In this document: one piece after another, positions 3,646-62,384 of the stretch
Position numbering within the stretch: position 1 is the stretch's first letter
Layout of the letters: every line of letters starts with the position of its first letter
NCBI GenBank assembly: GCA_030704615.1
Contig: CM060733.1
Span: 33,232,001 to 33,296,000 of the forward strand
Origin: Takakia lepidozioides
Lineage: Eukaryota > Plantae > Bryophyta
Length of the DNA stretch: 64,000 bases
Reading direction: 5' to 3'
The notes under the pieces: generated by a model
Databases searched by the model: none
Seen by the model: only the letters and a program-made list of their open reading frames with translations
Told to the model about the DNA's origin: nothing
Translations under genes and position numbers: made by a program

Positions 3646-3839
3646 TCAGGTTTCGCAGGCAAAGCTTCAAGAATTGCGCCAGAATTTCGAGAAATAGATG
3701 GCTTGTGAGGCGGCGTAAATTTCCTCCTGAAATTTAGGGCCGATTCTGATAAGAGGTAAAAACAGGGTGAAATGTGTTGAAGAAGGTGCCTTCATTACCA
3801 GTGCCTGAGTTTATCATTGTGCCGCTGCTCCTGCGGCTT

Positions 3840-4480
3840 CTAGTTGACCATCTACCCATGCAGGTTTCTTGTAGCTATTGATCCATCTGGTACATTTCCA
3901 GCTTTGGTGATGCAACCATGCACCTCTTTGCCCTTTTCCAGGGCTGCCAGGCTTGCACACGCACTGCAAACGCACACAAACATGATGTGGTCGAACTTCA
4001 CCCTTTCCCCCATCATTTGCTTTCAGGTCTCCAAAGCCCCATCGCCCCTGCTCTGCACACCCTGCAAGCATCGCATTCCACAACACCACATGTTGAACAC
4101 TCCCTTGGCATCCTCAATGGTACCACATTTGGCATACATGGCCACCAGAGAAGTGTTCAGGATGACATCTGGAACAATTGCAGATTTGATCATGTCACCA
4201 GGGATCTCTTTGCCCTTTTCCAGGGCTGCCAGACACACTGCAAACACACACAAACCTTATGTCGGCGGCCTTCACCCCTTCCCCCATCATTCCCTCATAG
4301 GTTGGAGCCACCATCCCGCACCCCTGCTGTGCATACCCTGCAACTATCGCACTCCACGACACCACATCTCGTTCAGCCATAGTGTTGAACACTCCCTTGG
4401 CATCCTCGATGCACCCACATTTGGCATACATGTCCACCAGGACAGGGGCAGTGTTCAGAATGACATCTGGTAATCTGACA
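3840..4480 (-). pseudogene. Degenerate PLS-class PPR gene fragment
   Basis: Frameshifted pieces such as DVILNT..VDMYAKCGCIEDAKGVFNTMAERDVVSWSAIVAGYAQQG and LEKGKEI..DMIKSAIVPD, of the same family as the intact PPR at 9750-12701. Confidence 0.85.
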
Positions 4481-4494
4481 GACATTCACCTTTT

Positions 4495-4760
4495 AGAATT
4501 GTTCCAGCAAATTCCCCAACCCTACTGACTTAGAGGCTGTAGTGTCCAAAGCCATGTCCGTTTCCAGAAAATTGTCTGATGAAAATGAAGTTAGGCAGAA
4601 AACTTCCCTGGACTTGTTTCCAGTCTGTGACATGGGGGAGGACAGCATGGATGACCTCAAGGGTCTACCCACTCTTCTGAAATTTAAACTAAGGGCAGGA
4701 ATCCTACCTTTGAATAGCAAATAGAAGCAGAGAGGAAAGGGAGAGTGCAATTGCACCCAA
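4495..4760 (+). mobile_element. Non-LTR (LINE) 3' fragment
   Basis: gacttagaggctgtagtgtccaaagccatg...gacctcaaggg is nearly identical to 15490-15625, which follows an RT C-terminal fragment. It encodes LLKFKLRAGILPLN. Confidence 0.6.
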
Positions 4761-5679
4761 CTCAACTTATCACACTAGTTCCTATGGTCAATTGCATCTG
4801 CTACACTCTGTAATCTGACAGGCATTCACCTATCTGTTACCTGTTTTTGGATACTTTCCTGTTGTCACATTGGCAGTATCATGTCAAAGTCACTCCAAAC
4901 AAAGATTCACTAAACCAGCTAACTTGCAGAATTCAACATGGAAATTTAGGGCCGATTCTGATAAGAAGGAAAAACAGGGTGAAATGTGTTGGAGAAGGTG
5001 CCTTCATTAGCAGTGCCTGATTTTATCCATTGTGCTGCTACTGCTGCGGCTTCCAGTTGACCATCTGTTTCTTGTAGCTATCCTTCCACAGGGAATCATA
5101 GGTAATCTGGAGCTTGAAATCCGGGCCTCTTGGATGAATCTGGACCCACAATCTATCCCTACACTCCTTCAGCTATCCATGCATGTGTACAAATCGTCAA
5201 TACATCCTCAGCCTTGCTGCAGCTAGCAGCTGACACTGACGCCCTAACCCTACCTAAAGTAACATGTCAAAATCACTCCAAACCCACCATAGATCCACCA
5301 ACGAGCTTCTCCTCATCTATGTTATCTGTTTCTGGATATTTTCCTGCTGCTACATCGGCAGTAACTTGTCAAAGTCACTCCTAACCACCACAGATCCACC
5401 CAATGAGCTAACTTACAGAATTCAATATGCATCTCAGGGCCGATGTACACGGACGTGAAGCCTGCCTGGAAAGGAAGTAGTTTTTCCCCTGCAACATTAC
5501 CTGACTACAGCCACAAGCAGCACACACACAAGAGGTCCGTTTGGGTTCATGGTCATTCAAATCCTCCATGGGTCATGACACAAGGTCAAGGTCGACAATG
5601 TGGTGAGGGCACCTTCTTCTTCAACCTATTTCTGCCTGTTTTACCCTCTCATCAGACTCCACGCTGCTGCTGCTGCTTC

Positions 5680-6280
5680 TAGTTGACCATCTACCCATGC
5701 AGGTTGGTAGTAGATATTGGTCCACAAGGAATCATAGGTAATCTGGAGCTTGCACACCAACGTGATGCAGTTGGGCTTCACCCCTTCCCCCATCATTTGC
5801 TTATAGGTCTCCAAAGCCTCCATCCCATGCCCCTGCTGTGCACACCCTACAAGCATCGCACTCCACGACACCACATCTCGTTCAGCCATAATGTTGAAAA
5901 CTCCCTTGGCATCCTCAATGCTCCCACATTTGGCATACATGTCCACCAGAGCAGTGTTCAGGATGACATCTGGTACAATTGCAGATTTGAAGATGTCACC
6001 ATTGATCTCTTTGCCCTTTTCCAGGTCTGCCAGACGCACTGCAAACCGCACACAAACGTTATGTCGGCGGGTTTCACCCCTTCCCCCGTCATTTGCTCAT
6101 AGGTCTCCAAAGCCTCCATCCCGCACCCCTGCTGTGCATACCCTGCGAGCATCGCACTCGACGACATCACATCTCGTTCAGCCATAGTGTTGAACACTCT
6201 CTTGGCATCCTCGATGCACCCACATTTGGCCTACATGTCCACAAGGGCAGAGACAGTGTTCAGAATGACATCTGGTAATC
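5680..6280 (-). pseudogene. Second degenerate PPR fragment, a tandem duplicate of 3840-4480
   Basis: LEKGKEINGDIFKSAIVPDVILNTALVDMYAKCGSIEDAKGVFNIMAERDVVSWSAM with frameshifts. It shares both junctions (ctagttgaccatctacccatgc; gacatctggtaatctgacag) with the first copy. Confidence 0.85.
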
Positions 6281-6859
6281 TGACAGGCATTCACCTTTTT
6301 GCCTCGGTTGTCCCACCATTGGCTGGGGTCAGAAAAGTATTCATTCCACAGCTTCTCCTCGTCTCAGCTGTTACCTGTTTCTGGATACTTCCCTGTTGTC
6401 ACATTGGCAGTACCATGTCAAAGTCGCTCCAAACTATCAAAGGCTCACTCAACCAGCTAACTTGCAGAATTCAACATAACACGCTGAATGAGTTTTTTGT
6501 TCTGCTGGTAACGTTATTCCTCTTGGTTCCTGCATGACACAATTCTTGATTGAACAGAGGTCTCTTGCCTCTTTATATACCCTTAGTATCCTGAATTAAG
6601 GATTCTTTCTCTTTACCAAGCTCGTGTGATACATAAACAATATCTGCAGACAGGAATGAAACAGCTCGATGTAATAAGGACAGACAACTACCTTCTTGAC
6701 AACCTCCTGCATCAGCATCGGTGAACATGGATTGGGCACTCTATGGCGTATGCGGTGTCCGAAGACCTGCCAGCTTCACAACCAAACTAACTCAGCAAAA
6801 TGCTTACTGCCAGAGACCACCTAGCTTTGTCTGGCTCCATGTGAAGGATGCTTTCACAA

Positions 6860-9055: not shown

Positions 9056-9749
9056 TACCCTATACACAATTATAGGTTATTAGCAATGGATACCGTGGAT
9101 ACATATACTCTTTTTATAGAGGGAAGGATCAGATGTGTTTCTTGAATGAGTGCCTGTGCTACTGGTTAGATACTTCAGTCCTCTCAGTGCAATCCTTGTA
9201 TGCATTAGTGTGTCATGAGATATGGATTCAGGACTGGAATTGTCCCTGATTACTGTGGAACCTAATTTTGACTGCAGAAGTGGGAGCCCAATTTTCACAA
9301 CTGGAACTCTGTCAAATTCCTTTTTTACAGGGAAACCCTCACAATTTGGGCCCTTTACAGAGGAGGGGGGAAATTAACCCCTTTCATATAAGCCATTAAC
9401 CGCAAATGATCAAGACAGGATCAAGACACCATCCCCAGACCGGCCCGCCATGAAACCACACCAATCCACTCAAATATACTTGTCAGCTCAAATTGGATGC
9501 CTCTTCACACATGGCAAGAGAAGGAATGGGATTCAGCCTCTGTTGGTGCAAAACTCCAAACCCCAACAACACCAGGGCTTTCTGTGATGTGCATGCTACT
9601 GCAATCTGTTTGACGGACTCCTTTGCAAAAAGGTGCATTACACTTGCCTGCTGCTCTGGAATAAATAAATTGTTTCATCCAATGTGATCTATTAACAATT
9701 ATGACCATTCTGCATACAGATGCACTTTCTGTCATGCATGTTGCTCTTT

Positions 9750-12700
9750 CTACCAGTAATCCCCACAAGAACAAATCCCATCTTGGAAGTGGTGGAAGCG
9801 GTTGGCATCGCGTACGACCAGTGCTCGCCCAACAATCTTTGAGATGAGCTTTGTGGCAGTGTGGCAGTCACCACACACCCGAAGGTTCTTCATGATGCTT
9901 ATAGGGGTCCCAGGGGGTGTGCTAATCAGGCCAAAACAAATTGCCAATCTCTCACTATGGTAGCAAAGAGAATTTTCCTTTTGGTCCTCCTTCACATCAT
10001 GCAACACAAAGCGTGTGTCAGGAACGTATCCTGCCTCCTTCATTGGCCCCGACAATCTCTTCAGCTCGATATGGATTTCCTCAATTCTTTGATGCGATTT
10101 GTCGTCCACAATGAATCTATGTAATTGGTTGTCCACTTCAATGCAACTGTGCCCTGGTTCTTTTATTACACCTCTGTCTTCCATCATTTTCCTCACCTTT
10201 GCTGTATCGTCCCACCTGCCAGCCGCAGCATAGATGTTTGATAGCAGCACATAAGTTGCAGCTTCCTCTGGATCCGACTCGAAAAGGGATTTTGCTGCAC
10301 ATTCTGCTAACTCCACATCACCGTGAATTCTGCAGGCATTAAGCAAGGCACCCCACACTGAAGCACCTGGTTTGATTGGCATTTCATTAATTAGGACCTC
10401 TGCCTCATGCAATCGACCTGCACGGCCAAGAAGGTCCACCATGCAGCTAAAATGCTCAACGGTAGGAGTAAGGCCATGAGCCTGACTCATAGAATCAAAG
10501 TAGTGGAGGCCTTCATCCACTAGGCCCACATGGCTACATACAGACAGAACACATACAAAGGTGATACTGTTCGGCTTGAAGCCTTCCTGCTGCATTTGTT
10601 GAAATAGGTCAAGGGCCATCCTACCAAACCCATGCTGACTGTATCCTGCTATCATCACATTCCATGATACCACATCTCGTTTAGTCATAGTTTTGAACAC
10701 TTGATGGGCATCCTTTATGCTCCCACACTTGGCATACATGTCAACAAGACTGTTCTCCACAGTGATATCTGGGTCAATTCCAGATTTGATGATGTCATTG
10801 TGGACCTTTTTGCCCTTTTCCAGGGCTGCCAGGCTGGCACATGCCTTGAGAACACAACAGAATGATACCTTGTCAGGCTTCACCCCTTCCTGTATCATCT
10901 GTTCATACAACTTGAAAGCCTCTCTCCCACACCCATTCTGGGCATATCCTGCAATCATTGCACTCCAGGCGATCACATCACTTCGGTGGGCTGTATTGTC
11001 AAACACTTGACGTGCATCCGTTATGCTCCCACATTTGGCGTACATATTGACAAGGGCCGTCTCCAGAATGATATCTGGTGCAATTCCAGCTTCAATAATG
11101 TCAGCATGGACCTTTTCCCCATTTTCCAGGCCTCCCAGGCTGGCACATGCATTGAGAACACAAATGAACGTGACTTTGTCGGGTGTCACCCCTTCTCTGA
11201 TCATTTGTTCATACATCTCAAAAGCCTCCCTACCACACCCATGCTGAGCATATCCTGCAATCATCGCACTCCATGATACCACATTGGGTTTTAAGCCCTC
11301 CTGTTGCATTTGCTTAAACAGCTGCAGGGCGTCTCCAGTACACCCATGCTGAGCATATCCTGTTATCATGACATTCCATGACACCACATTGCGTTGAGCC
11401 ATGTTGTCAAACATTTGACACGAGTCCTTCATGCTCCCGCATTTGGCATACATGCTAACAAGGGCAGTCTCTAGAATGATATCTGGCGCAATGCCAGCTT
11501 TATTGATGTCAGCATGGACCTCTTTGCCCTTTTCCAGGGCTGCCAGGCCGGCACATGCATTGAGAACACAAATGAAGGTGACTTTGTCAGGTGTCACCCC
11601 TTCCAATATCATTCGCTTATACATCTCAAAAGCCTCAATCCCACACCCATGCTGAGCATATCCTGTAATCATTGTGTTCCATGAGACCACATCCCGTTTA
11701 GCCATATTGTCAAACATTTGACAAGCATCCTTCATGCTCCTGCATTTGGCATACATGTCGACAAGGGTATTTTCCAGAGTGATATTTGGCTCAATTCCTG
11801 CTTTTCTGATATCGCCATGGACCTCTATGCCCTTTTCCAGGGCTGCCAGGCTTGCACATGCCTTGAGAACAGAAATGAATGCGACCTTGTCAGGTGTCAC
11901 TCCCTCCCGCGTCATCTGTTCATACATCTCCAAAGCCTCTCTACCATACCCATGCTGAGTATATCCTGCAATCATGGTGCTCCATGACACCACATTTCGT
12001 TGGCCCATATTATCAAATACTTCACGTGCATTATTCATATTCCCGCATTTGGCATACATAGTAGCAAGGGCAGTCTCCAGAATAACATCTGGCACAAGTC
12101 CAGATTTGTTGATTTCAGCATGGATCTCTCTGCCCTTTTCCAGGGCTCGTAGGCTGGCACAAGCCTTGAGAACACAAATGAATGTGACGTTATTGGGTGA
12201 AGCTCCTTCCCATCTCATTTGGTAATACATCTCCAAAGCCTCCCTGCAATACCCATGCTTCACATATCCTGCCATCATTGCAGTCCATGTAAATACATCC
12301 CGTTCAGGCATTTTATCAAAAACTTGGCGTGCGTTCACCACACTCCCACACTTGGCATACATGTTGACAAGGGTGTTGAGTAGTAAGATGTTTGGCTTGA
12401 ATCCACTTTGAATAATGTGGGCATGCACCTGCTTTCCCTCTTCTAGAACTTTCATCTTGATGCACTTCTGCAAAAGACACACATAAGTGTCGGAGTCTGC
12501 CGGAATGTCCCGTTGGTTCAAATTGTACAGGGCTTCTTTCAGTCGTCCTGCCATACACAGAGTTTTCACATCAACACATTGTGCATGACCTTGTATCATG
12601 GCAGCTATCTCTGCTTTCACCCAAGGAGGGTTCGACAAACCCTCAATCCAAAGGGCCTCCTTTGTGCGCTTATGTCTGAAGTCTGGTGATCTTGGGCTCT

Positions 12701-14095
12701 TCTGTTAAAACGACCAGTGGGCGCTGAGCAGCCATAGCTTCAACCACAGCCTCACCTAGACCCAGCTACAACCAGCAAAGCTCCAAGCATGTACAGGGAA
12801 GAAGCTTGAGAAACCTATTTTCATGCCCTGCTAACAAGGAAGAACAACCTACTGTAAGAACCATGCTTTTGCTGCTTTTTTGAACAAAGAGCACAATTAT
12901 CATTACAGAAGCAAATGGAGGTACCGGAAAATCCACCAAAAATCATCATGCCACTTTCAGCCTCCTTCAAAATCTCCCACAATAAAGATAGCCTCACCTT
13001 GTCAAACCTGTTGTCCCACCACTGTGAAGGATCTGAGAGAAACTCCCGCCAGAGCTGATCTATGCTCATTGTGTCTCCTGCATGCAAACAGAAGTCAAGC
13101 ATAGATCTACAGCAGCTCGTGTAGGCTGAGTCTCATTGCGCAGTGGCATAGTCTCCCCAGTGGGCTTCCCATGGAAGTAATCAACTTGTTTCTCTGTTTC
13201 TCTCCAGAAATGTTCACAGTTTAACTGGCTCCCTATGTGTCCAAATGGCTCCTATGTGTCCAAAATATGCAGAGTGTTATATTATGTGTTTGTTCTGCAT
13301 AGTTTTTTTCATGATCTTTTTGGGTTTTTCAAGGACCTCATAAAGTGTTTCTCTGTCTATCTCTCCTGTTCGCCAGAATTGGGCACAGAACTACAGCAGA
13401 CGTCACATGAGTACATCTCTCTCCCTCTCCAGCTTCTCAAGCTTGGTGCCACTCATGCATACAGACATGTGTCCAAAATTTTCTGGACTGGGGACTAGAG
13501 CAGCAGTGATTTTTAGCATGACCTACATCAATCCTCCACTCCCTGAAATTGGATTCTCTTTGGCTGTGGGCTATATTTGCATGTTCAATTCCATACCCTG
13601 GTAGGTAGAAACCCCACAATTGACTCGGGACTATTTCCTTGAAGGAAGCGTCATAGCCATTACTAGCAGGACCAATCAATAAGTGCATCCCTCTTCTACC
13701 TCATTCTCCATAGGTTAGTGAATGTTGGTTTCCACTTCTCCACAACAATTGAAGGACAACAAGATTGTCAATTCCACTCATGTACGACCATAAAGTAAAC
13801 ATCTAGGACGGTCAAGGACAACATCGAGGCTGTGTTGAGAGAAGCAGAAAATTCTAAGCAAATATGCACGTCTTTTACCTTTCTCCGCTATCTCTGGTGG
13901 ATAGGGAAGCATCGTAGCCACCACTCGCACGGGTCTGGGGCCCGACAATGCCAAACTGGATACCCATATCACCTCCATGTCCTTTAATCTGTTATATGAT
14001 GTGAGGTTTTCCACCAATTCGTCGAATGGAGAAAAGGGGGGCTTTGATATAGCCGATCCCTGCGTGCTCAGGAGAGCTCCGAAGCTCTCCACCAT
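9750..14095 (-). CDS. PLS-class PPR-E1-E2-DYW RNA editing factor (C-to-U type) with an N-terminal OSB-like PDF motif; exons 14095-13879 (tentative), 13077-12998, 12701-9750
   Basis: About 21 P/L/S repeats, E1/E2, PG box (KEPGHSCIE), HSERLA, CGDCH and terminal GDYW*. GT-AG introns in consistent phase join ..WWDNRFDK|KSPRSPDFRHKRTKEALW.. to the main ORF. Exon 1 ends in phase 1, matching the phase of exon 2. Confidence 0.93.
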
Positions 14096-14438
14096 CCCTC
14101 TGCTAGAGACGACGGGAGGGGAAGCAAGAAGAGAAACTTTTACAATCTAACCACCCACATGAGCATTTAAAAGAAACATTCGTTGTCACATCTCTCTTAC
14201 ACTTCACTGGTGCACTTGTCGACGAATTCGAAGGTTAAAGCCAGAGAATTCTGCTGCAATCAAAAGTTCGCGACTACTGTACTTTCGGTTCCTCAACAGA
14301 ACCCAAGTCTTATTAGTAAAGACTACCTACAAGTCTTGTCTCTTTCTTCTCTCTAGATGCAATGGAGTTCTCACTTTCACCACGAGCACAGTTATGTCAT
14401 ACACCTATATAGGTAGAGTGAAAGTGACTTAAGCGTTC

Positions 14439-14446
14439 TAGGGTTT
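14439..14446. promoter_or_regulatory. Telo-box (TAGGGTTT) in the ~550-bp divergent region between the PPR-DYW gene and ZNHIT3
   Basis: Exact reverse complement of AAACCCTA, about 200 bp upstream of the ZNHIT3 ATG. Telo-boxes are common in ribosome-biogenesis gene promoters. Confidence 0.4.
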
Positions 14447-14648
14447 CCAAATCCAAAGGTATTAATTTTACTTGCTTGTTTCCAGGAGTCAAGGCCTGTG
14501 ATTCTACAGCTCCTTTTCAACTGCATCTGGTATATAGTCGGTCTGTAGGTATTCAGGGACGTGCGTACTTTCTTGAAACTGTGGTCGCTCTTTGCGACAT
14601 AATCTGTACTTGCTAAGATTCCTGGTTCAGAGACTCGCCCAGTCGGCA

Positions 14649-14969
14649 ATGGGGCGTCAATGCGAGGTGTGCAAAGATGCTGAATCCAAATACAAATGCC
14701 CTTGTTGCCTTGCACCCTAGTAAGTGTCTTTTCACCTATGTCACGTTGTAGTCTAATGCAGATCTTCCCTCGCCTTGCATGGGTGATATTCGCATTAAAA
14801 TAGAAAAGGTTATGTTCACGTGCTCCTGATTGGCAGTATGTGGTGCCTACAGCCTTGCCCGATTCCTGATGGTAGTAGTACAATGTAATCACCTCTTGCG
14901 CGAATTGTCTCTCTACAGATCTCTTCAATTTCGTCACTCCCCCACCCCTTTCCACTGGACTATATAAGC

Positions 14970-19733: not shown

Positions 19734-20840
19734 CTAGAACTGGGTATCCTTCACGAGTTTCCTCTTCACAGGAATCTTCTCTTCCGCCTGCTTTTGCAGG
19801 TCCATGAATTCTGCTCCCTTGTTAGCAAACAACCTTCGGAGATTCATCACCGACAGATCTCTGAAGCTGCTCACAGCCAGATCTGCCTGTGTGAGCTCAT
19901 AAGCTGGGTGAGATCCAATGAGAGCAACTGCTTTCATTGTGCAATTGTGCGCTGCAGCAATACCCTGGGGGTCATCTTCAAAAACTACACACTTGGAAGG
20001 GGGGCGATCGAGCTTCACAGCAGCAGAGAGATACCTGTGTGCAATTGAGTCCATGCCATCCTCCTCTGTTACAAATGCTCTAAAGTACTTACAGAGGCCC
20101 ATTCTCTGTAGAACTGCAAGGAGACTGATACGATCCATGGAAGAGGCTATCGCACATGGAACCCCAGCTGTGAAGAGAGCCTCTAACCATGCTCTCAAGC
20201 CTTCCATCGGAGCTTGCACAGTGGCTAATTCCTCAAAATAAAGAGTTACTAGTCTATTCGTCAAGCGAGTTAGTTCACTTTCAGAGACAAGATCTCCCCA
20301 GTCTAAAATCTGTGCAAGAACGCGATCAATACTCATACACAGCATCTGTCTTCGTTTTTTGGAGCTCAAAGGCAGGGTTTTTCCTTCTTCTGCAGCGAGG
20401 CGATTCCACGCCACCATCCGAAGGGCATGAGTGTTGAGCAAGACGTTGTCCCAAGAATAAATCAAACCAAAAGCTTCGTCAGGCTTCATGGCATACCGGA
20501 TTCGTTGCAGTCCTCGTTCGCGCATTCGGTCATTCAAGAAGTCCACATCAACATGAAGGGGTCCTGTTGGTCTGAAGGTTGCAAATCCCTCGCCGTGCTC
20601 TGCACCTATGACTTCTTCAGTAAACAAATTAGCCCCTTTCCTTGCCAGATATCTGCCGCCATCCGCGTCGTTGTTTGAAGCGAACCCTGGTCCTTTACTA
20701 CCAGCCGCCATCACTACCCTCCTCCCTCGCCATGGCTGCTTCTGCAATCTTACAAAAGACACATCTGGTCTGGAACTAGTCAATTCCAAGGCTAAAATTG
20801 AAAACGGGGGAGAAGATGTAGGATGCCCAGCCACATGCAT
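19734..20840 (-). CDS. HAD-superfamily hydrolase, plastid-type (PyrP2-related, At3g10970-like group); intronless CDS
   Basis: MKPDEAFGLIYSWDNV motif I variant, LDRPPSKCVVFEDDPQGIAAAHNCTMKAVAL (HAD motif III/IV) and a transit-peptide-like N-terminus. First ATG is at 20840. Confidence 0.9.
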   Translation of the reverse strand: MHVAGHPTSSPPFSILALELTSSRPDVSFVRLQKQPWRGRRVVMAAGSKGPGFASNNDADGGRYLARKGANLFTEEVIGAEHGEGFATFRPTGPLHVDVDFLNDRMRERGLQRIRYAMKPDEAFGLIYSWDNVLLNTHALRMVAWNRLAAEEGKTLPLSSKKRRQMLCMSIDRVLAQILDWGDLVSESELTRLTNRLVTLYFEELATVQAPMEGLRAWLEALFTAGVPCAIASSMDRISLLAVLQRMGLCKYFRAFVTEEDGMDSIAHRYLSAAVKLDRPPSKCVVFEDDPQGIAAAHNCTMKAVALIGSHPAYELTQADLAVSSFRDLSVMNLRRLFANKGAEFMDLQKQAEEKIPVKRKLVKDTQF

Positions 20841-21044
20841 CTTGTTTCCTTCAAAGAGAGACAAATACACCCCAACCAACTTTCAAGCAACCTCGTATCT
20901 CCTCCCGTAAAATTCTTTCCCTTGCGTAATCTTGTGTCTGTTCACTCTTGACTACCCAACAACTTGAGGTTCACTTCTACTATACTTTCTCTCTCTCGCC
21001 CACTGTCTCAGTCCACGAAGTCCTCAATTTCTGGTCTTCATTTC

Positions 21045-27804: not shown

Positions 27805-30800
27805 ATGCCACAGGCTGCATTGCATGCCACGCAAAATTGGGTGCGCTGCATTCTGCAGCAGGACAGTCTCTGCCCATGCAGGCAAGCTCTGCCCTTGTTT
27901 TACAGTGGCCAAAGAAGCCGTCTATGGAAACCCTTACGGACATTCAGTGTGCACACCTCCGAGTATTCCACCGCGGGCATAAGAGAGGTCAGGACTATCA
28001 CTGCGTATGGAACTTTCGAGTACAGGAATTGTGTTTCCTTATGAGAACTTTGACTTCTAGAGCTTTAGTGAGCGAAAACGAAAACTTTGGACCTTGATCA
28101 TAGCCCAGCCCTGAAAGCTTAGAGGGATCTGGGGTCTAAGTGATTGCTTAGCATTGTTCCCTTCGTTTGGAAGACCATCCTTTGCTTGTATCCTGGGGGC
28201 ATATTAGAATGCATGGCATTGGTTTTTGCACTCTAACGTTTGCTGGATTCCTCTTGAGAACTGAATTGTGCGTCAGGTGGAGAATGAGAACAGGAAAGGA
28301 ATATTGGAGTACCAGGGGACGGTGCCCGATGGCCTTGAAAAGACTCGATTAGACACATGGCTGGCGCGGCAATTGCCACGAGTTAGCAGGGCGCGAGTCC
28401 AGACCAGCATTCGGCAGGGACTAATTCTAGTCAATGGCCAATCCATGAATAAGGTCACCTCCGTCTCATCCACATATAATCTTGAGTTCCAGCAACTAAC
28501 GGCCAAAGTAGGAGGTTTCAAACAATTTCTGGTGGGCAAGGAGTGCCCACTCAGCTTGTAAGCAGGTTGTAGTTCAGGATCTCTCTTCCAGATGGATTTA
28601 ATAGGCAAGAAGGTGCTTTACTTCAAGGATTGTGTACTTTCAAGTGCAAAGACACAAGTACACTTCGATCTGGGCAGCAATAACATATCTCATAGTATGT
28701 TTCAACTGGGTTGGACAGGTGTCATACATAGTGAGAGAAGGAGACCAAGTTGATTGTCAGCTTTCTGGGCCCCAACCAACAGAGGCAGAACCTGAGGACA
28801 TTCCCTTGGATATTCTGTTTGAGGACAAGCATTTGTTGGTCATAAACAAACCAGCTCACATGGTAATTCTTCATAGACTACTTATCCAGTTTCAGACATA
28901 TCAGCTTTCAGGTCAATATTGTGACAATGACAACTGCCTTAAGACACAACTGGTTGCTTTTACAATTGTTTTGTTGTGAGGTATAGATTATGTGTATACG
29001 TCCATCTGGGAGTCCTCAGCAAGCCCCTGCTTCCTCCATTTATACAATCATGTGTTCGTTGTCCTGTGGCCCAAGGTCAACCAACTTGGCTAAAGAATTT
29101 TTCCAACTTCTGCTTTCTATTTGAAAGCTGTGTCTCTTTCTTCCTTTACAGTGGTGCTGCACAGGTGGTCCATCCTGCCCCAGGTCATTCAGAGGGAACG
29201 CTTGTGAATGCATTGCTGCACCATTGTGGCCTACCTGCCATGCGATACATCAGCGGATCAACTCCCAGAGCAGCTCTTGAAGACCATCCAGAGGAACTTG
29301 AGGAACTGCTGGACGACAACGATTTGGAAGTTACAGTGGAGCCACTACCTGCATGGTCAGGGCCAGCACCTGTGATACGGCCAGGCATCGTGCATCGGCT
29401 TGATAAAGGCACTAGTGGGCTTCTTGTTGTGGCCAAGGTATTCTTTGCAATCTGACATGTATCAATGGACTGCCAATGATCAGCCATACAGCCATACATG
29501 AAGAATGCCGAGTTCCATGGGATATCTTCATCATCATGGCAGGGCTTGAGAGTGCTGTATCATTCCTAATAAAATGAGTCTACCACTTCAATTGTCAGGT
29601 TAATAAAAGCACATCGGATCGCTAATATCATTGCTTGATTGAAAATATCCACTTATTGAAGTTCAGTTTCATGCTAGAATTCATTATTTCAGTTGTTGAT
29701 GTGTGTGCATTGGTTTTCAGCATAATGAACGTGGGTGCAGCACCAGGAAACTCATGAGGCTGGAGAGTTGTGTGTTTCTTTCATATTCCCAAAAGAAGCA
29801 CAACCCAAGAAAATGAGTTTTTAGTTATCTCTTACTGTCTAGTAATGCTTCCAGACAGATTACGACCTTGCAAATGTAAATTTTGTATGCATTCACAAAT
29901 TGCTTCATGTTGTTAAGTGGGCAATGTCAATTGTCGTGGGATCTCTGCTGGGAAGACAGTGGGTTGTGTGTCTCATTCTTACATGAAACCCCCGTCTGTC
30001 GTTGTATTTCTTTTTCCCAGGATGAACATGCCCATGCACACTTGTGTGACCAGTTCAAAGCTCGCACAGTCCGCAGATCCTATGTCAGCCTTACCTGTGG
30101 TGTGCCCTTCCTTATGGTTGGCCGAGTGGAGGTACCAATTGGCCGGGACTTACGTGATCGGAAGCGCATGGCAGCAGTTCCTGGTCCAATTGACAGCTCC
30201 AGGGCACGTTCAGCTGCAAGCAGGTAATCACCTTCGCCAGATTATTCTCTCCTCTGTGGGCAACCACAGTGGGAATGGATTTGGAGGATGGGAGATCCAT
30301 TTGTATCATTTCATAGATCTCCAGAAGCAGGAGTTGAATTGTTCTGATTTATGGTAGGCTGCAGCTTGACCGAAGTCTGTGCCTTATGATGATCTTAGGT
30401 GCTAAGAAATTGCACCCCATCTGTTGACTGTTCTGGGGTATTGATGGGGAGATGTTGGTTTGTGGTCCCACAAACGAAATCCGATTGCCAAAGATTTTCT
30501 CATGGCCGAGGAAGAGAAAGTGGCAGCGATCATTTGATCTGAACAGTCCTTCTGGGCAGAGTGGCACTGCATGCCAGTCATGTGAGGAGAGACCCTAACA
30601 CGATTGATTGAAGTCAGGTTTCATGTGCTTGAAGTCCTGGCTCATGGAGGCTCTGCACTTGTGGAATGGCGGCTGGAGACTGGACGCACTCATCAGGTAG
30701 CCTTCTCTTGTTTCTTTTCTACTTGGGGTGAGACCAGGGGGAACACTCCGTAAGAGAGTGCTTGGCCAGTTTACAATCTTCGCATACCAAGATGAATCAG

Positions 30801-31762: not shown

Positions 31763-33878
31763 GTAAGCTGTAAATTGTTTCCAGTACAAAGAACTCTTGC
31801 AAGCAGACAATGAAGACATCTTTACTCCCAGAGCAGCTTTGCACCAAAGCACGGTGCATGTGCCTCATGGTTAATCCATGTCTCCTAAGCATTTTGGTGC
31901 CTGAAACCATGTCGGGTCTACACGCTACTGGTAAATATCCAGGCGAAGTATTGGCCCTCACTAGAGCTACAACACAGGGTGTGCAACAGCTGCTTTGGTC
32001 TTTGTTGAGCTGGTTCTCAATTGCAGTGCGACCCTCATGCACCATGCCCTCAATATTCAGTTAAAGATTGTTCAATCAGACACTTATGATGGTATCCAAG
32101 TATCACTGGACATTATTTGACTAAGATTGGTCAAGTTTTTGGTGGGTTGTGTTTAAGGACATTATGAAGCATCGATCCCTCATCCATGCATCCTCAAATG
32201 TTATCAAGGCAGCAGAAGAGGTCTGATTTCCTGTGACCCCTTCTTTTGTCAGTTATAAGGTGACTTGTTGAAATAGAAATGGGACAGTGAGGCTCATCAC
32301 TTGCTACTGTGGTGACAAAGTAGATCCACGCTGAACTGAAGACCTTCTCGGGGTCTAACATGCAGTGTGTTACATGATATGAAAAGGGAGCAAAGAAGCT
32401 TTCTCTTGGCGAACCTTGTGAACAGCTGGCTATTTCATTTGGGCTTAATCAACAGGTCCCTGGATGCCTAGTATATGAATCAGCAAAAACCTTCAGCTGT
32501 GTAACTGACTGCCACACGCCACCAAGTTAATCACATACATTGCCAAGCAACCAATTGTTGCCGGAAAGCTGACTACTTCCACCACATTGAGGATGGGGTT
32601 TGTTCTTGTGGCTTATTGGTGAAACAAGCAGCATGGCACTTATAAACCCTTCAAACTGAGGCCTTGTTTTTGTAAGCAAAGGGTAGGAACCATTTGCGGC
32701 AATGACTGACTGCACTCTCTATAGTGATCAGAAGTCAAGCATGGTTACTGAACATCAGAGGAGAGCTGTCGAAAGATTGCAGGGAACGGGTGGCAATAAA
32801 GCAGAAAATCATGGCTGGTTGACAGTTTTGCTCCAAAGAAGCGTCAACATTGGGAGCCCCATAACACTCAGCAAGAACGGGTACTCAAGGAAGTGTCATG
32901 CATCAAGAGTGAAATTTTCTCCTGCATTCAGCTCTTTCTTGGGAAAAACTCTCTACCTCTTCTGCCTTATCTGTAGCAAACATTAGTGCACAGAAAGGGC
33001 AAGAGATATGACCTCTATGTATGTCGACCTCCAGCAAATTGTACTACATCCAGAGGTAGAATGCTGATGAAGTTCAGTAGAAACCATTGCATCAGCAACA
33101 TCAAGGACTCTATTCTGCCAATGACAAGAGAAATCAAAGAGAGAAGATGGAAGAGATAGACTTAAAACCCTTAACCTAGAAAGGAACACCGAACTTCCCT
33201 GCACTTGAATTCAAAGCCACTCTCAAAGGGTTAAAAGATATCTTCTACATAAAAAGGTATCTTCGAAACTAGCTTTTCCGTGATGTGAAAGGATGGAAAA
33301 GGCATCTACTAAAAGATATCCACTGCCCACTCACTGACTAGATGATAGAAGTGTATCTTTAAAGCATAGTTTATACACAAAACTTCTGCACAGAGGGTAT
33401 GTCTCACGAGAAGAGAATTTTCTCCTTGTCGCGAAGCACAGAAGAGAGATCTGTAAATGTGGTAAGTAGGAGAGGCGATCTCAAATGAGGTGCGTTTCAT
33501 GGAAACTTGTAACAGTGATGACCATGACAAGTGTTGGCCTTATTATGGAAAGGAGCAGGTCAATGAGATGTATGACTTGTATACGTGTTGACTCGCTGCG
33601 CCTGCTGTGTGGGTGCTGTGTGGGGGTGTCACTTGTCACCGTCGTCCGAAAGTGGTTCCCAGTAGCTTCCCAGGATTTCCATGTCGCTTGCTTTCTCTAC
33701 ATATGTGATCTTTCTCTCACACCTCCTCGTGTTATTTTCGCTTTCCATTCCAGTTCAACTTGTGGGTTCGTTCGAAATCTCATCACTTTCTTCTGAGTTC
33801 TGCAAATCTGAATCTGAGTCACAAGACAAAATTTGCAGGGAGGGTTTACCGAAGGACGGCTTAGTTTCAGAGGCAAAG

Positions 33879-35196
33879 ATGGCACCGGAGGGACAAGAGC
33901 AGGCCACGTTTGCGGCAGGTTGTTTTTGGAGTGTGGAATTGGCATACCAGCGTATTCCTGGCGTTGTTAAGGTATTTGAAAATCTGCATCTGTTTTGGGT
34001 ATGTAACATGTGTTCTTACATATCTGTTGATTTGATGCTTTTGTGGAGTGTCGAGGGAGTTGGATTTTCGTAAAACCTCTACAATCGTCCTCTCTTTTGA
34101 AGACTCTCTGTTAATTGCTATCTCTTTCTTTCAAGGGCGAGAGTAGCAGTGTGGCTTGTTCCTTGCCTTCTAGCATTGGGATCGCAATTCGCAGGGACCG
34201 TAGCCAAAGTTTACAGGGACCGATGAGGGCTTTTGGGTTCTCATTGAACGCCAGAATGATGAGCTTATGCATGGATGATACAGACGTCAGTAGGGTATAC
34301 TCAAGGTACTACCGCAAATCCCAAATACGAACAGGTCTGCAGCGGGAAAACAGGACATGTGGAAGCTGTGCTGGTAGACTTCAGCCCTGCTGAGGTTACA
34401 TATCAGCAATTGCTTGACGCGTTCTGGAAGAAACACGATCCCACTCAATTTAACCGTCAGGTAAGGATTTTGGTTCTCAGAAGATCTCTCTCACACCACA
34501 CATACAACCGAGCTCAAGCAAGTTGGACCATCACTTAATTTTAAGCTTTGAATGAACGGTACGCCAAGTGTTGGATACGTTTGATGTCAAACTTTCTGAG
34601 GGGAGGGTAAGCTCTCTAGGGTTGGTCATACTGAATGGTTGCAAGGGTCTCTCTCTCTCTCTCTCTCAGGTAGGGGAGAGCATGCCCCTAACCCCTGCCT
34701 TCCTAGTTTCGGAAATGTGTATACCGTCTACCGCGTCATACAACTACAGGTAGAAGTGATTACATCATCTCTTCTTATAAGTGTGGCAGGGGATGCAGAA
34801 GGGGCGAAGTATTAACATGGGTTGCCAAACTTCTTGTTCATGATTTCGGATATGCCACATATTTACGTTTGTAGCAAGGCATTGTGGTCACTAACTGAAA
34901 AAAACCAAAGTATCATCTAACACGGGAGGTATGGTGTTGGACAGGGTAATGATGTGGGCTCACAGTACCGTTCAGGAATTTACTTTCACACCCCCCAACA
35001 GAAGGAGCAAGCAATTGCCTCTTTGAAAGAGGAGGAGCAACGGTTGGGGAAGAAAATTGCTACAGAAATTTTACCTGCTACTGTGTTCTACCCAGCTGAG
35101 GAATATCACCAACAATATCTTGAGAAGGGTGGGGGTAACGGAAGAGGGCAGTCAGCAGCCAAGCGATGCAATGACCCTATCCGCTGCTACGGTTAA
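33879..35196 (+). CDS. MSRA: Peptide methionine sulfoxide reductase A, ~173 aa; exons 33879-33971, 34284-34460, 34945-35196
   Basis: [10 protein letters not shown] catalytic motif, [55 protein letters not shown]-terminal CNDPIRCYG*. Confidence 0.96.
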
Positions 35197-37051: not shown

Positions 37052-37825
37052 TCACCAGTAATCACCACAAGAACAAATCCCATCTTCAAAGTGGTGAAAG
37101 CGGTTAGCGTCCCGTACAACAATTGCTCGGCCAACAATCTTTGAGATGAATTTAGTGGAGGTGTGGCAGTCACCACACACTCGAAGATTCTTGATGAGAC
37201 GGAGAGGCGTCCTAGGGGTCATGTTGATCAGCCCAAAACCAATGGCCAGTTTCTCACTGTGGTGGCAAAGAGAAAATTCCTTTTCCTCCTCCCCACATCA
37301 TGCAATACAAAGCACCTGTCAGGCACATACCCCGCCTCCTTCATCTTCCCAGACAATCTTCTCAGCTCAGCATGGATTTCCTTAATTCTGGGATGCAACT
37401 TGTCATCTACAACGAAGGTGTGCACCCTGTTGCAAACCTCAATGCAGCAGCGACCTGGCTCCTTTTCAACCCCTCTGACCTTCATCATTCTTCTCACCTT
37501 TACAGTATCAACCCACCTGCCAGCTGCAGCATAGATGTTTGATAGCAATATAAGTCGCAGAATCCTGTTCATTCCACTTGAGGATAGATGTTGCCGCACG
37601 TTCAGCCATCTCTACATTGTCATGGATTTTGCAGGCACTAAACAAGGCCTTCCATACCACAACATTTGGATTGATTGGCATTTTATTAATCAGGTCCACT
37701 GCCTCATCCAGTTGTCCTGCACGTCCAAGAAGGTCCACCATGTAGCCAAAGTGCTATACTGTCGGAGTGACACCATGATCTTGAATCAGGGAATCGAAGA
37801 AGCGTCTTCCTCCATTCAGACCTAA
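37052..37825 (-). pseudogene. 5'-truncated, frameshifted PPR-E-DYW pseudogene
   Basis: MVDLLGRAG, E1/E2 motifs, KEPGRCCIEV, AGYVPD and terminal ..CSCGDYW* spread over three frames. Colinear with the 3' end of the intact gene. Confidence 0.88.
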
Positions 37826-39444: not shown

Positions 39445-40385
39445 TTACTTGTCTTTTCTGGTTTGTGGGCCTTCTTCCGCATTGTCATTGTCACTTGAGT
39501 CTCTCTCTTCATCAATATATCCAACCATTTCAGTTTGTACCACTGGGCACTGTAGTTGTCTCATTTGCTTTATTGCATCATCTGCAATATGGAACATGTC
39601 TTTGTTTTTTAAAATCCCCAAGTCTTTGATTGGCTTCTGTTTGCATTTCGAATTCAGCCTCTTTTGCCCAATCCATGTCGAAGGTTTCACCATGAATAAT
39701 ACATAGATTATGTAAGCAAAGGCACGTAGTGACAACGTCGGGGACATGTCGCAATGGCATGTCAATCCTCTTCAGCAATATCCTCCACCTGCCTTTTAGT
39801 ATTCCAAATGCTCTTTCCACAACCATGCGAGTACTAGATTGAATGAAGTTCCAATGTACTTTTTCTCGGGACAAACCATCTTTCTCACCGTTGAATGGAG
39901 AATAAAACCAAGGGCGCATTGGATAAGCGGCATCACCAATGAACTTATAAGGTAATAATGCTCCCTTCATGGTTCTTCTACCTATGCTGGTTTTCTGAAA
40001 TAAAGCCCAATGATGGGTTCTACCAGCCTAACCAAAGTCATAATCCCAAATCTTGCATTTTGCATCCACCACCCCTTGTAGCAACGCTGAATAAAACCCC
40101 TTACAACAGTAATATGAAACGAGATCATCCGGAGGTGTAATTATTGGTATGTAGCTTCCATCAATTGTTCCAAGTATGTATGGTATACCATGGAGGGCTT
40201 CAAATTCAGCTGAAATTATCTTTATCCGTGCTGAAGATGGTTTCTCAAAAACTAAGGGTCTCAAAAGATTTCTAATTGCTGTACAACATTCTCTCACTAT
40301 AATAGATGATGTATCAATGGCTACCCCATAGGTATCACCACAACCTAATAAGGTATTACCACTACCCAATCTTGATAAGGAAAGA
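39445..40385 (-). pseudogene. Harbinger DDE transposase (DDE_Tnp_4-like), frameshifted
   Basis: LSRLGSG, GTIDGSYIPI, KGFYSALLQGVVD, IGDAAYP, STRMVVERAFGILKGRWRIL, CLCLHNLC. Confidence 0.85.
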
Positions 40386-41090: not shown

Positions 41091-44000
41091 CTTCACAGAT
41101 ATTCAGCAAAAAGAGAAAGCTATTTGAAAGCTCATTATCCATATCTCTGGGAGAGAGGAATAGACATAGGGGAATCATCTGGACCTCTCACACCATTAAG
41201 GCCAGAGAGTACATCACCCGTTCATTTGCTTTCTTGATAAGTGAACAAGGAAACAGTCTCAATTTGGCATCATCGCCATTCTCATTCTTCACTATACACA
41301 TGTGCTCAAATTGGCTGATGTGTACATCAGGATCCTTTTTTCCTGCATATATTGGAAAATGTGGCTTTGCCTGTGTTGGAGGTACCGCCATCTGTGGCCC
41401 TACACCCTGCCCTCTGACAGGTGCTGGTCCTCCTATAGGTGCTGGTCCTTGAGGACCTGCTGTTGTATACCGGAAGAACCAGATTTGGATGCCACTCCTT
41501 TTTATTCTTTACAAGAAAGATTAAGGGATTTGGTACATGAAGAAGATCAGCCACGAGGGGAAAGATCTGAGGTACATCCCTGGGTTAAAGATTTGACAAA
41601 AATCTTTTATCAGAGTTGGCATGGAACACCAAGAGTAGGAACTCCAGTTTTTGAAACACAAGCCAAAGAAGGAGAGGAAGATGTGGCAGAGCCAACGGAG
41701 AGTTCAAACTCTCCAACACCATTTCAGTTGAGTTATATGAGTGAGGAAGAAGAAATCCAAGAGAAGAACTTGGAAGATAAAACAAAGAGAAGAACTTGGA
41801 AGATGAAGAAGTAGACCCAACAGTTGAGGTTGAGACTACAACCAGGACATCCCAACCTGTTGGACCTGGATCAAGTGGAGCACTTGGATCATAGGCCAAC
41901 ACAGGTGTCGGCTCAGGGGGATCAGGCAGGCAGCTTGGATCTGGCTCTGGGGGGACAGGGAGTGTGGGAAGTAATGCAACTGGAGCTGAGGGTACTGCAA
42001 GTACAGGGGGGCCAGTAGCAGGGAGTGCTCAAGGGATATATGCAAGGTTTCCTAATAATCATTTCTTAACCTGGAATGGCCTAAGTACAGCATTCCGAAA
42101 CAGGTTCAGGACAAGCAAAACTGAGGATGAAGTGTATGGGAGTCTACAACAGTTGAGGCAAAAGAAGCATGAAATTGTTGAAGAATATATGGAGAAAATG
42201 GAGTTAATGATGAAAAAGTTGGCTGTTGTACCAGCACCAGGATTACAAAAGACTTGGTTTGTGAGTGGACTAAGACCTGAATTACAAAAGAAAGTGGATA
42301 TGCTACCCCATAATATAGTAGAGAAGGCATTCGAAACAGCCAACAGAATTGAGCAATTGGGAATGCTCAAGGGAGATAAGAGGGATGATAACGACTCTGA
42401 AGATGAGTCAGATGAGGAATAAGAGCAAGAGCTCAGGAGGAAAAGCAAGAAGAAGGAAAATTTGAAGAGGGACAACTATGAAAAAACATTGGAAGAAATC
42501 TTGAAAAAATATGCCACAGAGGCTGCAACACATTGGAGAAAGGGTGTTTGGTGTGCAAAGTGCCAAAATGAAGGCCATACCACAGCTGAATGTCACATGA
42601 AGGAAAAACACTATACTATCTGTAAAATGGATAACCATTCTACTGAGAATTCTGTTATTACAATAGAATGACAGCTACAAAAGAACCCAGACAAGTGAGG
42701 GTGCATCAAGTGCAACCCCAGCCAATAAGAGACAATGACCAGGACCACTATGGTAGGCCTGGTGGATATAACAATGGTATGGCAGGAAGAGGTAATCCAA
42801 GAGGGAATTACCAAGGCAATCCCAGATGCAACTATCAGGGTAATCCAAGGGGGAATTACCAGCCAGGGAATCAGGATTATAGAAATAATCCCAGAATAGA
42901 CCAAGGGCGAGGACCCAATGGTGAACAACTGTGTTACTATTGTAACCGGGCAGGACATCGCAAAGCAGCCTGTCCATTCTGGATCCTCTTATGTTGGTTC
43001 CCAACATCCGAAGTCCAGTTTCATGAACTGCAAGGTAGGGGAAGTAGATTACTTGAAGCCCCCAAAACAACCTTGCGTTAACGCAAAGCATTTAGTGGGT
43101 TCACCGGACTGTTCTGGGATCTCAGGGTTAAGAGCACCACGATTCTACAGAAGCAGACAATCGCTATGCCACAGGCAGTGCAGCTGCTGAAGGAGCTGCG
43201 ATTGGAAGGATTGTTATGCAAGAAGTGGTCTTTTCATCATCGGGGGTTGATGATCCAATTCATTCAGAACTTTGAGCCTCAAACAAGAGTTATCAAGGTG
43301 AAGGGAGTAGATATAGAGGTTACTCCGCAGTATTTGCAACAACTGTTTGAATTACCAACTGGTCATGTGAACGTGGATGAGCACAGGGCAAGATTGCAAA
43401 TAGAGGATCTGTTCCAAGAAATGAGTTTCTTCAGGACCTAGGGATACACCTGCACCAAGGCCAAGTATCCAGGATTAAGGGAAGTTGGCCAAATACTGAA
43501 CGTTCTGTTTGCCATGAAACAGAACCAACAGTATCTTAGCAGATCTTTCACGGAGGAGGTACTGAAAGCCTTGAGAGGAGAGGATGTAGCTTGGGCGGAG
43601 ATGATGTATGGTCTAGTGGAGGAGATGAAGCGGTTACAAAATACTACTGCTAAGTCCCCGATCATTGTGTCTGGCCCAATAATTGCGCAAATTATCTTTG
43701 ACTCTTGTTTGCTTGATGCACGACAACACACGGTGATGGGAGTGTTTGAAACAGCCACAACTGCAATTGAGGAGCAAGGCTCTTCACAAGGTGAAGTGGG
43801 ATTGGAGGGGTAGCACCAGTCCAAGAGGTAGAAACGGGATGCGACTGTAGTGGCCGATCGACTAGCTACAAGAAAACCACAAGATGATGTTTCCATAGCT
43901 CTTGTGCAGGATGAGGAGCAGCAGCACAGGGGGCTGTTATTGCTGGAGGCATGGCCTTTGGAGAGGAAGGAAGAAGTTACCTCAGTATCACAGCCAGTTG

Positions 44001-45392
44001 ACCCGGTTGCCTCAGGGGTAACTCAGATTGTACATGCTGCCATACCGGAGCCTCTTGTTGGGGAAGGAGAAGGGTTGGACATCCCCACTACAGAGCAGGT
44101 AGTGGCAAAAATTGAGAAGGGTGACCTTCTCTATGAAAACTCTAGCATGGTCGGAGAACCAGTAGTACCAAAGATGAAGAGTCTGACCAAGGGAATCCCT
44201 GCTATGCAAGTCATGCCCAAACCTGTGGCGGAGGTTAAAGGGGTAGAGTACAAGGGGACAGCAGCACCTGTGGAGGATAAGGTTGCTCAGGAAGAAGATC
44301 ATGTGGGATCATGGCCTGACTGGTTTGTGAAACATCAAACTTTGGAGGATCAGGGAGAAAAACAGCAAGTTCTCCATGAAGACCCACAGCAGGCCATGCT
44401 TATGAGTTCCATAAGCAGGACACTTAATTTGTTGGGCACCTATGTGAAATCCCATGTTCCTTCCACATAATTGGCAGCATTGAGGGAGGAGCTCAAACAA
44501 GAGTTTGAGGCAAGAATTGCCACTGAGTGTGCAAATAAGGTGGATGTGGAGTAGGTAACAAGAATTCCACTGGAAGTAAGGCTTCCATACCATAAACTAA
44601 TTGGAATGGTGTATACTTAGTGGTGACTTTATATGAAGTCGTGTATGACCAACTTTGTATCCCAATCTGTTCTGTTTGCATTGACTATCTTAGCCAGGAT
44701 AGTACATAGTATTTTGTTGGTAGCGTCTGCCTGCCCATTACCCTGTGGGTAATAAGTTGTACTCTTCCTATGCACAATCATGAACTCTTTAGTCAATAGT
44801 TCAATGGTCTCACTAATGAAGTGACTTCCCTGGTCACTGATAAATTCCAAGGGACAGCCAAATCGTGTAAGTATGTTCTCATACAGGAACCTTGTTGTGG
44901 ACTTAGCTGTGTTGTCCCTCAGAGCTTTAGCTTCCACCCACTTTGTAGTATAATCAGTGAGTGTGATTATATACTTGTTCTGTGTATTCTTGGCCGGTGG
45001 GTTAATTGGTCCAACAAAGTCTAGTCCCCATTTCTGAAATGGTTCAGTAGGCATCGTAGGATGCAAAGCCATCTTCCCAGATCTCTGCAATGGTCCTAGC
45101 CTCTGACACTCATCACAACTCTTGCAATACTTGTGTACATCCTTGAACAAAGTAGGCCACTAGTAACCTGCAAGTAGTATCTTCTCCAAAATGACCTCCA
45201 ACCACTCCTTTATGAACTTCCTCCAAAACTTTATTTACTTCATGGTGGTATAAGCATCGTTTAAGTACTCCATCAGGGCCTAGCTTATACATTCTGCCCC
45301 CTACCATAATATAAGGTAAAGCCTTGATAGCGATTCTCTTCCTCTGCTCATTACCATAATTAGGTGGGCACTGACCATGAGTAAGGTAGTAT
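41090..45392. mobile_element. Scrambled, partial Gypsy LTR retrotransposon copy (gag, antisense-ORF and integrase pieces in mixed orientation)
   Basis: Segments match 46890-48815 (mostly +), 55740-57330 (inverted) and 51640-52510 (inverted integrase: KWGLDFVGP, SDQGSHF, YYPQGNGQA). Confidence 0.85.
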
Positions 45393-62175: not shown

Positions 62176-62384
62176 AATGCCTCGGCGTGAGCCTGGTCAC
62201 GTGAGCGCGTGAGCGCGACTGCGCTCACGCCACGTCACCTTGCGCAAATGCCAGGTCACGGGGCTCAGTCCACGTCATCACACGTGGAGGCCGAGTCACC
62301 ACGCACCCAGAAAGAAGTGGAGTGTATTCCCGCGGATTGGCACCCTTTACCGCGGAAACAAGCTGGACGACATAATAAAAGGCA

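Follow-up and report, generated by a model that had tools for sequence, protein, structure and literature searches.

A PLS-class PPR-E1-E2-DYW gene of Takakia lepidozioides with an OSB-type PDF motif, split by a phase-0 intron, ahead of its repeats

The 64,000-nt stretch of DNA analysed here (the window; Takakia lepidozioides, GenBank assembly GCA_030704615.1, contig CM060733.1, positions 33,232,001 to 33,296,000 of the forward strand) raises the question of whether a PPR gene ending in a DYW cytidine-deaminase domain also encodes, ahead of its repeats and across an intron, the PDF motif of the single-stranded DNA (ssDNA)-binding OSB proteins, and, if so, how the motif came to be there and what it would do for an editing factor. 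The preferred reading, given a probability of about 0.78, is that of an intact, transcribed nuclear gene of the PLS PPR-E1-E2-DYW type, with an OSB-homologous PDF motif ahead of the repeats that would play an auxiliary part by binding single strands 5' of the RNA target. The gene was read on the minus strand, and all gene coordinates are those of the whole window.

The gene structure was confirmed. Exon 1 (12998-13077, minus strand, 80 nt) encodes the first half of the PDF motif (LW.EF.SDPSQWWDNR..K), has TGCAG before its 5' edge and GTGAGG after its 3' edge, and, read from the ATG at 13069, gives 24 codons, MSIDQLWREFLSDPSQWWDNRFDK, up to 12998. The intron (12702-12997, minus strand, 296 nt, GT...AG, phase 0) lies inside the motif and ends in the acceptor TTTTAACAG, the last base of which is 12702. 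The second half of the motif (12597-12701, minus strand; K.P..PDFRHK.T.EALW....NPPWV...) forms the head of a long exon that begins at 12701 with KSPRSPDFRHKRTKEALW... (given at length, KSPRSPDFRHKRTKEALWIEGLSNPPWV...), and whose frame stays open for 983 codons, down to 9753, with the stop codon at 9752-9750. Upstream, this frame is shut by a TAA at 12707-12705, and the first possible start within it is a TTG at 12638, with no ATG ahead of the repeats, so that the second half of the motif cannot be translated without an upstream exon. Exon 1 and the long exon are in different frames, and removal of the 296 nt rejoins them. An earlier examination of the letters alone (the sequence-only reading) had proposed a GT-AG, phase-0 splice from 12998 to 12701 that brings the two pieces in frame, and the sequence bears this out; its exon of 13077-12998 stands as an 80-nt exon, but the ATG is at 13069, and 13077 is the first base after AG (TGCAG/GA, the slash marking the exon edge here and below). 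Read-through or chance as the origin of the fusion was ruled out by frame, register and intron conservation.

Downstream of the motif, the long exon carries a PLS-class PPR array (10326-12593, minus strand) of ~22 motifs, arranged as P1/L1/S1 triplets, one extra P, and P2-L2-S2, with Pfam matches to PPR_2 (1.4e-120) and PPR (3.7e-112), and with 7 P, 6 L and 6 S anchors recurring in the translation at a period of ~101 residues. The E1 and E2 motifs follow (10032-10325, minus strand); Pfam E_motif was matched at 2.8e-20 over 63/63 model positions (residues 794-856 of the 984-residue translation), and E2 was assigned from its place between E1 and DYW. The DYW cytidine-deaminase domain and stop (9750-10031, minus strand; DYW_deaminase 2e-43, 1-93/93) include the PG box EPGHS, HSERLA (9959-9942), CGDCH (9875-9861) and a terminal CSCGDYW. 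The hallmarks of PLS-class PPR-DYW proteins, namely P/L/S motifs in tandem with P2-L2-S2, E1/E2 and a full DYW deaminase, were thus all found, and the PPR-E1-E2-DYW part is predicted to be a canonical editor of the C-to-U type (PG/HxE/CxxCH/DYW) with nothing broken. The ~21 PLS repeats, E1/E2 and DYW domain with intact HSE and CxxCH seen by the sequence-only reading agree with this, at ~22 motifs counted.

Neither exon piece of the PDF motif gave a Pfam match; PDF has no Pfam model, and the identity of the motif was therefore tested via its relatives. A profile made from an alignment of 19 motifs, mostly PPR-borne, gave 36.3 bits for the piece in exon 1, over profile positions 2-22, and 48.5 bits for that in exon 2, over profile positions 22-56. 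When the profile was run over the whole window in six frames, both pieces were among the three best matches (E 6e-10 and 1e-13), and since they also cover complementary halves of the profile, the matches are not due to chance. A word search with the exon-2 N-terminus gave no match and was uninformative, as PDFRH and KEALW differ from the common words. Kinship with OSBs was established by searching the PPR-borne PDF motif of the liverwort Calypogeia against OSB-length proteins, which retrieved a 286-residue Juncus effusus protein (P0132) at E 1.3e-19. This protein has the classic OSB layout, with a single PDF motif at its C-terminus behind a Pfam SSB OB fold (1.6e-12). In ungapped comparison with this Juncus motif, the exon-1 piece was identical at 10/21 and the exon-2 piece at 18/34 positions, and exon 1 ends on the motif column next to the one on which exon 2 begins.

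A census with the same profile against 1.84 billion representative proteins returned 1232 proteins at E<=1e-3, of which 571 reach E<=1e-10. Among the 147 top matches that were examined, 74 have an SSB-like fold ahead of 1-5 PDF motifs and are OSBs, eight are PPR proteins, and the remainder are PDF-only arrays or short fragments. Within the census, seven proteins of 500-1160 residues (P0134-P0138, P0140 and P0147) carry 6-13 tandem PDF motifs, most of them without a detectable SSB fold or PPR; no mention of such PDF-only tandem arrays was found in the OSB literature. By homology, the identification of the N-terminal motif as the OSB PDF motif is solid, and the same identification in the sequence-only reading is upheld by the match to an SSB-plus-PDF protein at E 1.3e-19 and by a profile that retrieves mainly OSB-type proteins. 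The gene product has the PDF motif and lacks a Pfam SSB OB fold; judged by domain content, the gene shares a module with OSBs and is not itself an OSB.

The position of the intron was compared across lineages. The motif is interrupted in the OSB gene of the angiosperm Juncus (...WWDNRNSK/GTCAAA...TTTACAG/KNPNYPDF, phase 0) and in a PPR gene of Calypogeia (...WWDNRSEK/GTACTT...TCGTAG/VNPRYPDF), and a PPR gene of the fern Adiantum has two PDF motifs, each split at the matching column; the 12998/12701 splice of the window gene equals these in column and phase. The first-half exon of Calypogeia is exactly 80 nt long, with a phase-1 acceptor (TTGCAG/GC) five codons ahead of (E/D)xLW, and the window exon (13077-12998) is likewise 80 nt long, with its acceptor-like TGCAG/GA at the same place and in the same phase, while in the Juncus OSB gene the exon begins one codon farther upstream, with equal phase. 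The shared intron column and phase, together with the 80-nt unit, indicate that transfer of the PDF unit between OSB and PPR genes involved genomic exons and not cDNA. A PDF tree was built from 351 distinct full-length instances over 53 columns, with identical duplicates, partial motifs and the split motif of the window left out. In this tree, a branch with support 0.78 sets apart 49/54 PPR-borne motifs, together with 12 short fragments and no OSB, and the motifs of Adiantum and of one unnamed protein lie outside it; the tree, weakly resolved, fits one old fusion. Because the phase-0 intron is ancient and common to OSB genes, the fusion of the PDF module with a PPR gene would have taken place at the DNA level and early in the history of land plants.

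Transcript evidence was sought in two small public runs, stored as contigs and only guessed to be RNA, which were placed on 9200-14800. Contig depth was 0 over 9200-9573, present throughout 9574-12752, 0.16 and 0.05 (two runs) in the intron bin (12753-12939), 831 and 44 in the exon 1 bin (12940-13126), and 0 over 13127-14061. Zero-difference contigs lie on the long exon at 9862-10221, 11064-11161, 11743-11841 and 11928-12094. Contigs join 12690, 12692 and 12695 to 12998 with 11, 9 and 6 replaced letters, and one more joins 12695 to 13004 with 12 replaced letters; each such joint is the exact 12701/12998 junction in the spliced transcript of a close paralogue. Other contig joints, within the repeats, were set aside as cross-matches between PPR paralogues with no meaning. 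The gene family is spliced at 12701/12998, and in this copy the exons are covered and the intron is not.

The junction put forward by the sequence-only reading was recovered exactly in paralogous contigs, but no listed contig spans it with this copy's own exact letters, which lends something to the idea that the exon-1 piece resembles the motif by chance or survives as a relic, unspliced to the PPR open reading frame (ORF), with translation beginning inside the long exon. The two halves, however, complement each other in register, four lineages share the column and phase of the intron, the long-exon frame is closed by the TAA with no ATG ahead of the PPRs, and the drop in depth to about 0 is confined to the intron; an unspliced relic is extremely improbable and close to refuted.

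The preferred reading, with both exons in one transcript, leaves the 5' end to be accounted for. The exon 1 edge at 13077 coincides with a conserved internal phase-1 acceptor, so a leader exon is expected, and originally the gene probably began with an exon other than the 80-nt one. The ATG at 13069 lies 3 residues, and an ATG at 13102 lies 14 residues, ahead of the PDF motif. Some relatives have 40-200 residues ahead of the motif (e.g., a Sphagnum fragment with a Ser/Arg-rich leader), and in others the annotated protein begins with the motif itself (P0031, P0032 and Adiantum P0122). A search with the leaders of homologues upstream of the window gene gave no match, as expected of fast-evolving presequences. 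A candidate leader ORF (13879-14095, minus strand, 72 codons), of which the donor AAAG/GTAAAAG fits 13077 in phase, is acidic, has neither a Pfam match nor contig depth, and was not adopted, standing as an unproven candidate. Farther upstream, low-depth exact contigs were seen at 14114-14368 and 14437-14719, and two contigs diverge from the window sequence at 14719, where an exon edge is suggested.

These features of the 5' end bear on whether this copy is a recent duplicate, decaying or mis-targeted, that lost its leader exon and kept the PDF exon by descent. The 5' edge of the exon at a conserved internal acceptor, with no upstream coding exon found, would agree with such a history, as would the decayed relatives within the window (6374-6295, 3800-6260 and 37066-37600) and the deviation of this copy at two invariant PDF columns. 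A duplicate in decay is nevertheless regarded as unlikely, given a 983-codon frame that is fully open with all catalytic residues, two intact splice sites, exact-match contigs on the long exon, and other family members that are likewise annotated from the motif itself.

The distribution of the architecture was examined in the 120 best matches of the long exon. Best identity was only about 50-54%, from which it follows that proteins of Takakia lepidozioides itself are absent from the protein database. The contiguous motif (LW.EFFSDPSQWWDNR..KK.P..PDFKHK.T.E.LW....NPPWV) stands ahead of the repeats in 27 of the 120, some with two or three copies. By lineage, the PDF motif was found in 22/26 homologues from Diphasiastrum, 2/2 from Calypogeia, 4/8 of Sphagnum type, 1/4 from Adiantum, 0/56 from gymnosperms and 0/3 from angiosperms, which amounts to 29/40 in seedless plants and 0/59 in seed plants; the absence from seed plants could in part be an annotation effect. 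Cluster names looked through for the editing factors of Physcomitrium contained only Sphagnum and Diphasiastrum. Annotated proteins of Diphasiastrum, Calypogeia, Sphagnum and Adiantum also have the PDF motif and the PLS array contiguously in one frame. The gene is a member of a large and apparently undescribed family in liverworts, mosses, lycophytes and ferns, and the expectation of the sequence-only reading that the architecture may recur in non-seed plants held, at 29/40 seedless homologues.

That reading had also known of no functional description, in keeping with a literature search in which no paper linking the PDF motif with PPR, DYW or editing was found, a remark in Zaegel 2006 or Gutmann 2020 remaining possible. 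A 2026 kingdom-wide survey of editing-factor fusions reports fusions of PPR, MORF, RRM and Znf only and does not list PDF (PMC13386178), and a 2026 study of the OSB family does not mention PPRs. Domain-based surveys of PPR-DYW proteins overlook the module because it has no Pfam model, gene models begun at the first ATG of the long exon lose it, and heterologous editing assays have used N-terminally truncated proteins. Programmable C-to-U editors are modelled on PPR-DYW proteins, which have been surveyed repeatedly; the presence of a conserved PDF motif in the majority of the nearest homologues from lycophytes, liverworts and mosses, and in none from seed plants, raises the question of how substrates were found before MORF, and of a link to nucleoids.

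The seedless distribution is also the ground for a proposal that the PDF motif is a protein-protein module or built-in helper, taking the MORF/RIP role in seedless plants, or serving oligomerisation. MORF genes occur in seed plants only (PMC13386178), a distribution complementary to that of the PDF-PPR genes (29/40 seedless against 0/59 seed-plant homologues), and OSBs are oligomeric (PMC6451138). The complementarity is, however, a correlation over few taxa, OSB tetramerisation is not assigned to the PDF motif, and the invariant Trp, Phe, Lys and Arg suit nucleic-acid stacking at least equally, so that a protein-protein role is considered quite unlikely.

Under the preferred reading, the PPR array and the E motifs would bring the DYW deaminase to a single cytidine in an organellar transcript. 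A flexible linker would hold the PDF motif as a small, separate alpha-beta-beta-beta-alpha domain, rich in invariant Trp, Phe, Lys and Arg, that would bind single strands independently of sequence, 5' of the PPR footprint; such binding would raise the rate or the affinity with which the target, or nascent RNA associated with the nucleoid, is captured. In AlphaFold2 (AF2) models, the PDF motif alone was confidently predicted as a helix, three short strands and a helix, at a predicted local distance difference test score (pLDDT) of 89.9, and a model of PDF plus PPR reached 89.8, with the connecting residues at ~60; the low-pLDDT linker suggests a tethered independent module. A sequence search of PDB and fold searches with the PDF model found no analogue (best Z 2.4). 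The PDF motif carries the ssDNA binding of OSBs, and the affinity of OSB2 for a 10-nt overhang is about 9 nM (PMC4166229, PMC6963530, PMC6451138). PPR proteins bind RNA with their N-terminal repeats at the 5' side, and affinity depends mostly on these N-terminal PPRs and on the target's 5' part (PMC13324415). We infer that the PDF motif has no part in catalysis or site choice; editing in E. coli proceeds without the N-terminal part, so the motif is not needed for catalysis.

Several points weigh against this reading. OSBs are reported to prefer ssDNA over RNA (PMC4166229, PMC6451138), and RNA binding by the PDF motif is an assumption; the binding of RNA or DNA by the motif in PPR proteins, and its role in editing, are predicted only, as are the roles that the sequence-only reading put forward, namely tethering to nucleoids, ssDNA or R-loops, a built-in cofactor and deamination of ssDNA. 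In E. coli, PPR56 and a consensus PPR-DYW protein need no N-terminal module for editing (PMC10482289, PMC13324415). This copy departs at two columns that are invariant in the 19-sequence alignment (F to L, K to R). Searches for a leader or transit-peptide exon came up empty, the ATG at 13069 provides no presequence, and import of this copy into an organelle is unproven. The junction contigs among those listed are from paralogues, in runs only guessed to be RNA.

The preference for ssDNA also gives rise to the reading that the PDF motif tethers the editor to the ssDNA of active nucleoids (transcription bubbles, R-loops, and replication or repair intermediates) and so couples editing to transcription, with, in its boldest form, the DYW domain acting on ssDNA. 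High-affinity binding of ssDNA, preferred over RNA, is the only known biochemistry of the PDF motif (PMC4166229, PMC6451138), and the PPR-borne motif retains nearly all OSB-invariant residues. DYW domains are, however, known as RNA deaminases, RNA editing by PPR-DYW proteins in E. coli does not depend on PDF (PMC10482289, PMC13324415), and one PDF motif on a monomeric PPR protein may bind far more weakly than tetrameric OSBs; a DNA tether is accordingly rated as decidedly unlikely for this gene. Extended to the family, the proposal that PDF motifs anchor hundreds of seedless-plant PPR-DYW editors to nucleoid ssDNA, some of which might in the extreme form deaminate ssDNA, is a long shot. If such anchoring were true, editing would be coupled physically to transcription or DNA repair, and the loss of PDF in seed plants would coincide with the invention of MORF.

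Elsewhere in the window, a decayed paralogous 80-nt exon was found at 6295-6374 (minus strand), with an in-frame TGA and with CAG/ and /GTGAAT kept at its edges (42.4 bits, positions 1-24). Truncated PPR fragments follow it, with PPR repeats at 5644-6051 (minus strand; PPR_2 2.9e-13), and PDF-PPR debris extends over 3800-6374 on both strands, including remnants of the second half of the PDF motif at about 5494-5580 (plus strand) and 5139-5074 (minus strand). A second E/E+/DYW tail at 37066-37600 (minus strand) ends in CSCGDYW and has stop codons in the deaminase region, and is thus a pseudogene; no PDF match was found near it. A fragment of a Harbinger-type DDE_Tnp_4 transposase (6e-16) lies about 2 kb upstream of this pseudogene, at 39581-39970 (minus strand). 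Fragments of long terminal repeat (LTR) retrotransposon gag, integrase and reverse transcriptase (44632-45150, minus strand; 41964-50573, plus strand) are of a kind that fills much of 41-63 kb, and an open 965-codon Ty3/gypsy pol ORF with reverse transcriptase, RNase H, integrase and chromodomain occupies 59334-62228 (minus strand). An intronless 381-codon HAD-type hydrolase ORF (19737-20879, minus strand) and single exons like pseudouridine synthase (RluA type; 28976-29452, plus strand) and peptide methionine sulfoxide reductase (33681-34070, plus strand) are ordinary neighbours.

Compared with known systems, the window protein shares with OSB proteins (described in 2006 and summarised in PMC4166229, PMC6963530 and PMC13393729) the ~50-residue PDF motif, its invariant residues and the phase-0 intron inside the motif. 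OSBs consist of a transit peptide, an SSB-like OB fold and 1-5 C-terminal PDF motifs, with no PPR or deaminase, whereas the window protein has one PDF motif N-terminal to PPR-E-DYW and no OB fold. With the PPR-DYW factors, such as Physcomitrium PPR56 (PMC10482289) and the protein of the consensus structure (PMC13324415), it has in common the PLS array, P2-L2-S2, E1/E2 and PG/HxE/CxxCH/DYW, but in the published descriptions consulted only a targeting peptide stands ahead of the repeats, and assay constructs were made without the native N-terminus. The MORF/RIP cofactors of seed plants offer a possible analogy as RNA-binding helpers of PLS-PPR proteins with a complementary lineage distribution (PMC13386178), but they are separate proteins with no sequence or fold relation to PDF. 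Maize PPR4 (RRM plus PPR; PMC9459714) and the RRM-PPR fusions (PMC13386178) resemble the window protein in having a small nucleic-acid-binding domain N-terminal to the PPR tract; PPR4 differs in that this domain is an RRM of another fold and not a PDF motif, and in that it is a P-type splicing factor, whereas the window gene encodes a PLS-DYW editor.

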